This document shows positions 3,872 to 5,986 of a stretch of 64,000 bases of DNA, one piece after another. A program made the position numbers and the translations under genes. Numbering within the stretch: position 1 is the stretch's first letter; each line of letters starts with the position of its first letter. The DNA comes from Trichosphaerium sp. ATCC 40318 (Eukaryota; Protista; Tubulinea): the NCBI GenBank assembly GCA_038496445.1, contig JALMLS010000404.1, positions 62,001 to 126,000 on the forward strand, read 5' to 3'. The notes beneath the pieces were generated by a model that saw only the letters and a program-made list of their open reading frames with translations, searched no databases and had not been told where the DNA came from.

Positions 3872-4898
3872 TGCTCTTATTTTAAGATACGGTGCTCGTA
3901 AACCACAAAACAATATTCCGCGCTGAACAAATTCAAGGGTTGAACGACATAGACTAAGAGTAGAATTGAGTCCCAGATTAATTCGCCCAGAAACGTCCGT
4001 AGTACATTGTAGCACGCTGCATGGTTTAGGTTATACATTATCAGGTAAAGGTATGTACAGAGGAAAGAAATAAACACAAAACACAATGGCTTGAGGATAA
4101 ACAAAATGGTGAAACCATAAGATGGCATGAAACTGAGTTCTAATCAGGAACTCTGATAAATTTCTGCTTGAACACCCGGTGGTGTCTAACAACCTCGTAG
4201 AACAAAGAATTATACCAAATATACGTTAACATACTGAGAATGCGAAAAGAAAGCAAGACAAAATGCTTGACGTTTATTATGTAAATGTAAAAGGCAATAA
4301 ATAAAACTAAGACATTTTTAATAATAATGTGCGTTTACAGTTGTTGTAAACTTTTGTACTTTTCACGCTTGGCATACAGTATTAAATAAAGCGTTTAAGC
4401 CTATGTGTGAACACTTACATAATATAGCTCTATAGACACGGTAGAAGTGAACTGGTAACCTTGCGGCTATGGTGACCTTTTTTGAACTCTGTGTAGCCAA
4501 GTGTTCGGGATTGACGTTAAGTTGCAACTTATTGAATGGAAAAAAAATAAATTTCTCTGAACAACAACACAGTATTTTTACGCTCAGCCCAAAATAGTTT
4601 CAAGTTTACGAAGTAAACGCTATTTTTGGGACTATTACTACTAGTCACTTGCTCCCTTTTGAATCTGTTGTACTGAGTGGCTATCAGAGAAATATATTAG
4701 AATGAGTTGACACTTGACAGTAGTGCAAAATTTTCTTCACAAAATTTGTAGGTATACACCCTGTTCGCCTACAGATACAGTTGTAGTTATAATATGTTCT
4801 TCCCACATTTTTTTTCTTTTTTATTTGTTTGTAGTTAAATAAGATATCTCCCAGATCTACAAATGTGGTGCAGATAGTCAACGTGTCTTTCATCGTTT

Positions 4899-5010
4899 AA
4901 GGTCATTGGTTCGAATCCGATTCAGGCGTCGATTACGCCTCATGCAGTGATATCTGCAAGAGGAGGTTAGCCTGGTAGCTCAGTTGGTAGAGCGTACTCC
5001 TAGTAAGAGT
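4899..5010 (+). tRNA. Circularly permuted tRNA-Thr(AGT)-like sequence: 3' half (4899-4929) precedes 5' half (4969-5010); functionality unknown
   Basis: 3' part AAGGTC-ATTGG-TTCGAAT-CCGAT-TCAGGC covers variable loop, T-arm and acceptor strand. 5' part AGCCTGG-TA-GCTC-AGTTGGTA-GAGC-G-TACTC-CTAGTAA-GAGT covers acceptor strand, D-arm and anticodon arm (AGT). The halves pair over 6 bp in the acceptor stem and join at ~position 42/43. Confidence 0.75.
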
Positions 5011-5375
5011 TTATAATTACATCGTTTCATCAGTCTGGTTGGTGGTTTAAGAAAAACCCTAACTGGACTAATAAAATTTAAAGTCACGTGATGCGATCAC
5101 CACTTTTTTTTCCTAGCTTGTTTGCAATAGAAACCTTGGAAGCCATTCGAACGCTGAAAAGTATCCAACAAGTTGTGCAATAGCGTATGTTGTAATTAGC
5201 AGTAGGCAAGAAAGTGATGGCGTGCTCTTACTTTAGAAGGGCGTAACTTACTTTGTTCAGGTCTCTTTTGTTTGTAAATGACGGGGGTACACTATTGTTT
5301 ACAACGCTTTTGTCACATCAATACCTATGACTGATGAAGATACTCTGGAAAACGAAACCATCGTAAACATTTATT

Positions 5376-5670
5376 TTATTTGGCGTATTGCCTGTTCATA
5401 CAAGCAACGTCGCGAGTACATCTACTCTTAACTTGTACACACCAAGCAGAATCTGCGATATTTGGAGGTGATGACTGAAGAGCTGCTTTCAAGTCTTTAA
5501 AACCACCAAGTCTTGGACAACCCAAGTTAAACGCAAAGTCAACAATAGCGGATCGTTGAGAGCTTGTAAGCCTGCTGAAGTTCGAGCCTACATAAGACCT
5601 TTGCACAGCTCAATGCTGTGGAAATATCTTGGTTAAACAAACTTATTATTGCCCGTAATTCAAGCATTCG
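5376..5670 (-). pseudogene. T4-type (GH24) lysozyme C-terminal lobe, frameshifted remnant
   Basis: AIVDFAFNLG..RLGGFK.LKAAL and DSAWCVQVKSRCTRD match the phage-lysozyme C-terminal pattern. Upstream LFNQDISTA is in another frame. No catalytic N-terminal lobe is visible. Confidence 0.65.
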
Positions 5671-5986
5671 GTACGTACACAAAAAAGAAACTAAAGTCAG
5701 GGAACCTTCCTAATCATCAACCAGATGTTGTTGACAATTTCTTTTCCCACCAAAACTGGTGACTGGCTGTGAAAAACTAATGAAATTTCTGTTCCAACGC
5801 TGTACCGAAAGAAAACCGAAATCGCTTGCTGAGTGCTTATTAGAGGTTTTCCAGTGTGGTAACGCCAAAAATCACTAATGGCTGGTAGAATGGGAGCGAC
5901 TGTAGGCAATTTGACCTATAACGGAAGTCATTTGGGAAAAACTCAGAATTTTCGTACGCTTTTTATTTTTTTCACTACACGCGATA

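Follow-up and report, generated by a model that had tools for sequence, protein, structure and literature searches.

A family of conserved Pol III genes with a permuted tRNA fold in the amoeba Trichosphaerium sp. ATCC 40318

Permuted tRNA genes and the threonine unit

In permuted transfer RNA (tRNA) genes the 3′ part of the tRNA is encoded upstream of the 5′ part on the same strand, and a spacer joins the two acceptor ends. Such genes are known from Cyanidioschyzon merolae, prasinophyte green algae, the Bigelowiella nucleomorph and Thermofilum pendens (Soma 2007); the reported junctions are 20/21, 37/38, 50/51 and 59/60, each with a bulge-helix-bulge (BHB) or relaxed BHB motif, published spacers measure 1 to 74 nucleotides (nt), and the C. 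merolae genes have an upstream TATA-like box and a T-run terminator (PMC3978253). Bacterial and phage YrlA RNAs carry a tRNA module on a protein-binding scaffold (Chen et al. 2014, PMC4201824). The literature searched places permuted tRNA genes in algae, a nucleomorph and archaea only, and links neither these genes nor YrlA-like RNAs to amoebae. Here we report that the genome of the amoeba Trichosphaerium sp. ATCC 40318 contains a family of at least 21 conserved RNA polymerase III (Pol III) genes that combine a covarying terminal stem with a permuted tRNA fold. One of them, a permuted tRNA-Thr(AGU) unit (Thr unit), lies in the window, the 64,000-nt stretch of DNA that was analysed (contig JALMLS010000404.1, positions 62,001 to 126,000; part of contig C115 in the G000 numbering). 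Coordinates without a contig name refer to the window, and the features given there are on the forward strand.

The Thr unit shares with the algal and archaeal genes the order of the two parts, the 3′ part coming first on a common strand, and the spacer between the acceptor ends. Positions 42–73 of the tRNA (two anticodon-stem bases, variable loop AGGTC, T arm, 3′ acceptor strand and discriminator T) are found at 4898–4929, followed by a 39-nt spacer that closes the acceptor stem (4930–4968) and by positions 1–41 (5′ acceptor strand, D arm and anticodon stem-loop with AGT) at 4969–5009. A preliminary description of this DNA had placed the 3′ half upstream of the 5′ half, and this is exact in the sequence (4898/4899–4929, then 4969–5009/5010). 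ARAGORN and Rfam at gathering thresholds, run on the unrearranged DNA of the window, gave no match. After assembly of the halves (4898–4929 plus 4969–5009) within a script, ARAGORN called the joined 73 nt as tRNA-Thr(agt) and the minimum-energy fold was a cloverleaf. As described earlier, A1.G72 is its sole stem mismatch, and this mismatch is kept in all three Thr copies of the genome (see below).

The break may be read as 41/42 or 42/43, because leader and trailer both have a T at this place and the joined sequence is identical. The 42/43 break proposed originally is hence a valid join, but the 41/42 join gives the same sequence, and the parsed modules of the sister units break at 41/42. The proposed pairing of A43 with T27 extends beyond this locus, since pairing of 27 with 43 is the rule across the parsed class-I units of the family. 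The spacer forms a hairpin (4938–4963), and a competing AGGCGT/ACGCCT hairpin is present at the unit; both had been predicted, and both were found. The spacer is the least conserved part of the transcript, its hairpin pairs better in the other two copies and most poorly in that of the window, and it is unpaired beside both acceptor ends. Its length of 39 nt compares with 4–12 nt in the sister units.

Unlike the algal and archaeal genes with their BHB motifs, the Thr unit has no BHB helix, in addition to its break at 41/42 or 42/43, which falls in the 3′ strand of the anticodon stem. The duplex of leader and trailer (last 22 and first 22 bases with adjoining exon bases) reaches −4.2 kcal/mol, compared to a mean of −6.3 kcal/mol for shuffled sequences, which bears out the initial impression that no clear BHB is present. 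Among seven units (the Thr unit and six sisters) no BHB-like helix was found at the junction, and no duplex beats shuffled controls. Both junction sides of the Thr unit are T-rich, and the sequence that they share is direct, not complementary.

An 8-bp direct repeat, CATCGTTT, had been said to flank the unit and is indeed present at 4891–4898 and 5020–5027. Its occurrence on both sides of the tRNA parts had suggested a passive insertion, i.e. a circular or tandem-array tRNA fragment with an 8-bp target-site duplication. However, both copies lie within the conserved transcript, the downstream copy is a family-wide trailer motif, and the surrounding frame is common to sister units holding other tRNAs. 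The repeat is not significant alone, because an 8-nt direct repeat arises in such a stretch in 13% of shuffles. A 137-nt query with the unit matches only three paralogous loci and no tandem tRNA-Thr array with the same spacer; the flanking repeat is confined to these three loci as well, and no empty-site allele with a single CATCGTTT was found. Hence the reading as a target duplication is refuted by the position of the repeat inside the transcript, its frequency in shuffles, and the lack of array and empty site, and an insertion seems scarcely credible.

Promoter, conservation and RNA frame

A putative Pol III transcription unit of ~250 nt extends from 4862 to 5111, with a start placed within ~3 nt and an end given by the T run. 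Upstream of it lie the proximal-element-like box CCCACATT (4802–4809), with one mismatch to the family and U6 consensus CCACAAT, and the TATA-like box TTAAATAAG (4835–4843), which is conserved in the three Thr copies and precedes the predicted RNA start by ~27–30 nt. The T-run noted before near 5104 is a T8 (5104–5111), a presumptive Pol III terminator. Most of the sister units that were read have it in the corresponding position, and on the downstream side conservation ends with it. In sister units a CCACAAT-type box is located ~33 nt ahead of the TATA-like box. It is also present in four U6 small nuclear RNA genes, which display ACCACAAT, ~25 nt, a TATA-like box, ~20 nt, and then the RNA; the spacing from TATA-like box to start in the Thr unit agrees with these genes. 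The 68 nt upstream of the ordinary tRNA-Thr genes lack a CCACAAT-type box. This layout, shared with U6 and absent from tRNA-Thr genes, together with the edges of the conserved block, points to a U6-type external Pol III promoter and a Pol III terminator for the unit. As in the algal and archaeal permuted genes, a TATA-like box is found upstream and a T stretch downstream, and the A and B boxes are in reversed order.

The U6-type (type 3) class of Pol III genes includes the animal Y RNAs (PMC10498592). The Thr unit resembles type 3 genes and animal Y RNAs in the external proximal element and TATA-like box, the terminal stem made of both RNA ends, the U-run at the 3′ end, and the organization in small multigene families. 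It differs from animal Y RNAs, which carry no tRNA fold, in having such a fold, and it has no sequence or Rfam similarity to Y RNA.

The 137-nt unit is present three times in the genome, in the window, at C134:39694–39830 and at C152:79836–79971, with 96–100% identity. The three units are embedded in paralogous segments of ~1.25 kb that are elsewhere only 84–87% alike. Recurrence of the arrangement on three contigs with diverged flanks rules out an assembly chimera. Over the transcript, 11 of 250 columns (~4%) are variable in the three copies, compared to 39% and 43% in the flanks. Variable columns number 0/37 in the leader, 1/31 in the 3′ tRNA part (discriminator T to C in the C152 copy), 4/39 in the spacer, 1/42 in the 5′ tRNA part (a one-base D-loop deletion, again in the C152 copy), 5/93 in the trailer, and 0/8 in the T run. 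The conserved block of this three-copy comparison begins at the CCCACATT box and stops at T8, and the fold z-score of the transcription unit is −3.8. Judged from these comparisons, the Thr unit is a self-contained, conserved Pol III small-RNA gene.

The same data bear on the idea of a functionless, decaying relic, the three copies of which are kept alike by gene conversion. Decay would fit the A1.G72 mismatch and the spacer hairpin of the window copy, the least well paired of the three. Against this stand the sharp ends of the conserved block at promoter and terminator, the promoter elements that have been kept, hairpin changes that are compensatory or preserve wobble pairs (see below), and a frame common to at least 21 family members. 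We regard a relic as very improbable.

The frame comprises ~135 nt around the Thr module and is conserved as strictly as the tRNA part. The 5′ strand of its terminal stem (4865–4890; GTGGTG, GCA, then GTCA-A-CGTG-T-CTTT) pairs with the 3′ strand (5080–5103; AAAG-T-CACG-TGAT, the conserved GCGAT loop, CACCAC). Between 5′ strand and module is the leader linker CATCGTT (4891–4897), which holds the first copy of the direct repeat, is the same in three copies, and forms no helix with the trailer. Downstream of the module, the trailer linker (5010–5031) contains the family motif TACATCGTTT at 5018–5027 (W-rich consensus plus C[T/A]TCG), followed by a trailer hairpin of ~16 bp (5032–5069). Among the three Thr copies this hairpin displays one compensatory change, U-A to C-G, and two wobble-keeping changes; in the corresponding hairpin, the Tyr unit differs from the Phe unit by a compensatory change.

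Alignment of 12 units from end to end with MAFFT (A3) provides the frame positions that are here called invariant. These are 5′ G.GTGCA..GTC, T.C.TCG in the trailer, and 3′ ACG.GA.GC.A.CA.C followed by the T run. In general terms, the frame stem pairs 5′ GTGGTGCA..GTC with 3′ GAY-GCGAT-CACCAC, and the outer helix, GTGGTG/CACCAC in the Thr unit, covaries (GAGGTG/CACCTC, GAGATG/CATCTC, GCGGTG/CACCGT). In the 12 units the trailer T.C.TCG motif lies 4–12 nt past position 41, and the variable hairpin is common to all of them. Around the long Thr spacer the acceptor strands are out of place in the MAFFT alignments A3 and A4, which were therefore not taken for formal pair counting of the acceptor stem. 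A pairing of the trailer motif with the T loop, the leader or the 3′ strand was considered by eye and is unsupported by the variation among units.

A frame of this kind is not restricted to tRNA-bearing RNAs. Six loci (L052–L057; C1:947098–947453, C19:106174–106529, C62:213749–214104, C62:255407–255762, C89:21028–21383 and C91:210501–210856) have frame ends alike, with 5′ GAGGTGC/GATGTGC.., 3′ GGGGCACGCTACGC.A.CACCTC and a T run, and no tRNA inside. They carry 4–6 copies of an (A)TACTTCG motif among hairpins, and no Rfam family matches them at E-values up to 1. The same ends and motif in tRNA-less RNAs suggest that the frame has a role of its own. The setting of the Thr unit in a frame common to at least 21 genes and to tRNA-less RNAs is a further difference from the algal and archaeal permuted genes.

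Family members and ordinary tRNA genes

Sister units were traced genome-wide via sub-threshold YrlA matches and a pattern for the 3′ end, and were then read individually. Module boundaries were set by a rule-based parse, as brute force with ARAGORN over all joins was rejected as too permissive. The covariance model R1, which spans the 5′ frame through the T arm, matches 21 units at 40–69 bits (60.9 bits for the unit of the window), the next match in the genome scoring 27 bits; the count of 21 is a lower bound. Some pattern matches that were first taken as ordinary tRNAs proved on reading to be further permuted units.

The anticodons read are Thr AGT (3 units), Lys TTT (2), Tyr GTA, Phe GAA, Cys GCA, Ile TAT, Gly TCC, Glu CTC, Ser GCT, a Leu/Ser-type body with TGA, TAG or TAA, and CAT. 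In class-II-type units the frame departs at the position of the variable arm. Body and anticodon disagree in the Leu/Ser-type case, where one body is combined with both Ser and Leu anticodons. Deviations from a working tRNA are also seen in further modules, with U1.U72 in the Gly unit, a 3-bp hairpin as acceptor in the Ile unit, a mismatched acceptor in the Cys unit, a bulged T stem in the Tyr and Phe units, and an anticodon loop of 9 nt in the C27 and C36 units. The frame is kept in units with such modules. Three near-identical units on C34 (283429–283531, 340891–340992 and 394930–395031) carry the anticodons TAG, TAA and TGA.

Other RNAs of related layout were seen besides the family. A second class of permuted tRNAs (L095, C25:137100–137560; L015, C112:54964–55617) has the same promoter of CCACAAT and TATA and a different frame, in which 5′ AGATCTAGTAGT pairs with 3′ ACTAGGTCT ahead of a T run. 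The C25 unit resembles Glu(TTC) and is apparently broken at 29/30. A third class is closer to YrlA, with up to 38 bits (L005, C88:25532–26240; L007, C18:278088–278749; L087, C134:18540–18670). Its 5′ end reads GGGTGCTC.AATG, L005 and L007 end in CACCC, and T arm, closed acceptor and D arm are present, with no local anticodon hairpin after the D arm. L083 and L084 (C297:7130–7260, C4:642520–642650) represent a repeated element with a T-arm-like hairpin, ACAGG TTCGACC CCTGT, and without an ARAGORN tRNA call.

Ordinary tRNA-Thr(AGT) genes were found at four loci (L021–L024) by pattern search and confirmed by ARAGORN. They have G1:C72, a T73 discriminator and T runs of their own, and their sequence is unrelated to the permuted module. 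A genome-wide search with the separate tRNA halves and short junction patterns yielded no copy of the permuted Thr or Glu modules in canonical order, so that the linear tRNA-Thr(AGT) with identical halves suggested as a check is not present. Ordinary genes were also found for Lys TTT, Tyr GTA, Ile TAT, Gly TCC and Glu TTC. The short contigs C291, C318 and C369 (e.g. L016) contain dense, repeated tandem tRNA clusters, probably the organelle genome or copies of it; tail-to-head tRNA neighbours in these clusters give weak false YrlA matches and served as a control.

The permuted genes of C. merolae supply tRNAs that are otherwise missing from that genome. The amoeba, in contrast, possesses ordinary genes with the same anticodon. 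The four ordinary tRNA-Thr(AGU) genes render the permuted Thr unit dispensable for decoding, and a needed tRNA gene is less likely for this reason. For the Thr unit, a look-alike of tRNA or an additional tRNA that arises by an unrecognised route is the likelier interpretation. The suggestion of a new class of permuted tRNA thus stands in part: the anatomy fits, with a BHB-less, conserved Pol III gene, but translation would not depend on it.

Possible functions and genomic context

YrlA (RF02553) is the only Rfam family that matches the Thr unit end to end, at relaxed thresholds. In both RNAs, T arm, closed acceptor stem and D arm follow each other in this order within a stem formed by the two ends of the RNA. 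Unlike YrlA, which is without an anticodon arm, the Thr unit keeps a full anticodon stem-loop, and unlike the YrlA RNAs of bacteria and phages it is a eukaryotic Pol III gene from a many-member family with differing anticodons. Three elements project from its end-to-end stem, namely a variable hairpin, the C(U/A)UCG motif as a single strand, and a complete tRNA fold. The chain of this fold enters at position 42 and leaves at 41, and its acceptor end is closed by the spacer.

We tentatively favour a Y-RNA/YrlA-like scaffold RNA that acts as a whole and on which a tRNA-Thr(AGU)-shaped module is displayed. The RNA of the Thr unit would function uncut, in the fashion of YrlA, as a scaffold presenting the tRNA-shaped module; terminal stem and C(U/A)UCG motif may bind family-specific proteins, and the tRNA-shaped part may be recognised by tRNA-binding factors with the anticodon loop as specificity element. 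Splicing into an ordinary decoding tRNA would not take place. We count as support that the conserved block runs exactly from promoter to T run while the flanks are ~40% variable, that the promoter layout is that of the U6 genes, that the covarying frame is common to the 21 units, is conserved as strictly as the tRNA part and recurs in RNAs lacking a tRNA, that ordinary genes with the same anticodons exist, that several sister modules are defective, that body and anticodon disagree in the Leu/Ser-type units, that the seven junctions form no BHB-like helix, that YrlA alone in Rfam matches over the full length, and that a TROVE-domain gene is present in the genome. TROVE-domain loci were found at C75:170808–171991 (reverse strand) and C20:313423–314467 (forward strand). 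The C75 gene looks intact and, judged from its exons, approximately of the size of Ro60; the C20 copy is riddled with stop codons. As to the type of the gene (Ro60 or TEP1), nothing usable came from a PDB sequence search, NCBIfam or a protein atlas.

Several observations weigh against a scaffold. The YrlA score is 26.7 bits for the Thr unit and 44.4 bits for the best sister, far below the cut-off of 69. The Ro60-binding motif GNCGAA(N)G is absent on both strands of the Thr unit, C75 and C20 contain no permuted units, and no unit adjoins a TROVE gene. With no unit beside the TROVE gene and no Ro60 motif, the likeness to YrlA is to be read as a claim that the RNA works like YrlA, not that it belongs to the family. 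Moreover, the Thr module retains all that a decoding tRNA requires, with U8, G18G19, the G15:C48 pair, U33, A37, the T loop and the eukaryote-type A34 anticodon. Every parsed class-I unit is broken at 41/42, with the pairs 27:43 and 28:42 kept across the break by five different dinucleotides, and in the acceptor stem the Tyr and Phe units are set apart by two compensatory changes from C:G to T:A. Among the transcribed parts, constraint is weakest in the spacer, which would be expected of a segment that is excised. Anticodons are diverse across units and change faster than the rest among close copies: the three C34 units are 97–99% identical elsewhere, and their changes are concentrated in the anticodon loop (p ~0.001–0.007). 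Finally, the genome pattern search found no convincing ordinary tRNA-Glu(CTC) gene, the permuted one being at C201. The only canonical-order CTC tRNA seen (L082, C86:118229–118302) has an Ile-like body and two U.U acceptor mismatches.

The changes in the C34 trio suggest either selection for anticodon change or a mechanism that brings it about. More generally, these observations raise the question of a true permuted tRNA-Thr(AGU). A BHB-independent nuclease would cut leader and trailer at 41/42 with the frame as recognition element, a ligase would close the circle, ribonuclease P (RNase P) and RNase Z would remove the spacer, and CCA would be added. The complete cloverleaf, the constant break with pairs kept across it, and the failure to find an ordinary Glu-CTC gene fit this, as does a spacer that is the most variable transcribed part and single-stranded beside both acceptor ends; TATA-like box and T-run terminator match the permuted genes of C. 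merolae, and the short spacers are no bar, as published ones span 1 to 74 nt (PMC3978253). However, no BHB-like helix was found, the junction is at none of the reported positions, and four ordinary genes have the same anticodon. The A1.G72 mismatch is shared by the three copies, several of the sister modules are unfit to serve as tRNAs, the frame also occurs without a tRNA and is conserved as strictly as the tRNA part, and the genome holds no canonical-order copy of the module. In sum, maturation into a true tRNA appears unlikely.

Maturation need not involve ligation. In alpha-proteobacteria and cyanobacteria, permuted ssrA genes give a transfer-messenger RNA (tmRNA) in two pieces, which stay paired and are not ligated. 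Two-piece tmRNA derived from circularly permuted ssrA genes is described in the literature (PMC3985003). As in these genes, an intervening segment closes the acceptor stem of a tRNA-like domain in the Thr unit; unlike tmRNA, which is bacterial and has a single tag-coding function, the Thr unit is eukaryotic, and excision of its spacer is only hypothetical. By analogy, RNase P and RNase Z could open the acceptor loop and CCA could be added without ligation at 41/42, the pieces being held together by the terminal stem like a giant variable arm; this two-piece RNA would be aminoacylated for translation or for another aminoacyl-tRNA-dependent reaction. Such a form has precedents in the YrlA of Mycobacterium smegmatis and the permuted tmRNA genes, and requires neither a BHB motif nor a ligase. 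It would be in line with the long, covarying terminal stem, with the class-II-type units, in which the frame is at the variable-arm position, and with the Thr spacer, unpaired at both acceptor ends. On the other hand, the sister spacers of 4–5 nt are poor substrates for RNase P and RNase Z, and the defective acceptors of the Thr, Gly, Ile and Cys units speak against charging. On the ribosome, an arm that emerges from the anticodon stem at 41/42 may cause a clash. We consider a two-piece form improbable.

In a wider sense, the family might represent a second tRNA-producing system, in which genes with U6 promoters encode permuted tRNAs in a shared frame, and a BHB-independent route leads to aminoacylated tRNAs with chosen anticodons. 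This route could consist of a new nuclease and ligase or of a two-piece form held by the stem. Such a system seems somewhat doubtful; if true, it would amount to a novel manner of producing tRNAs in a eukaryote, and perhaps of regulating or recoding with them. Apart from this, the amoeba family unites the permuted order of tRNA parts with a scaffold that mimics tRNA. Permuted genes have so far been known from a few algae, one nucleomorph and one archaeon, always with BHB, and tRNA-mimicking Y RNAs from bacteria and phages. If the modules are matured, a new route of tRNA processing would be revealed. If they are not, as in the scaffold that we favour, they would be, to our knowledge, the first eukaryotic family of YrlA-style tRNA mimics, and the diversity of anticodons would suggest anticodon-specific partners.

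Relatives outside the Trichosphaerium genome were sought in two metagenome scans (with the tRNA core and the 3′ frame motif), which gave nothing or chance matches in high-GC coding DNA, and in two scans of viral contigs, which gave nothing or chance matches only; no relatives were found in these four scans. An open reading frame (ORF) of 35 amino acids within the unit had no match in an assembled-contig collection, and no ORF of more than 80 amino acids was found between 4128 and 7672. The paralogous segments flank the unit at 4449–4800 and 5112–5688. Downstream of the terminator, conservation at ~5140–5200 exceeds that of the adjacent DNA, and this stretch might represent a further small element. 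The genome comprises 70 Mb in 642 contigs and is eukaryotic. The window has a G+C content of ~37% and carries eukaryote-type genes, e.g. MGAT2, HSP90 and F-box/LRR.

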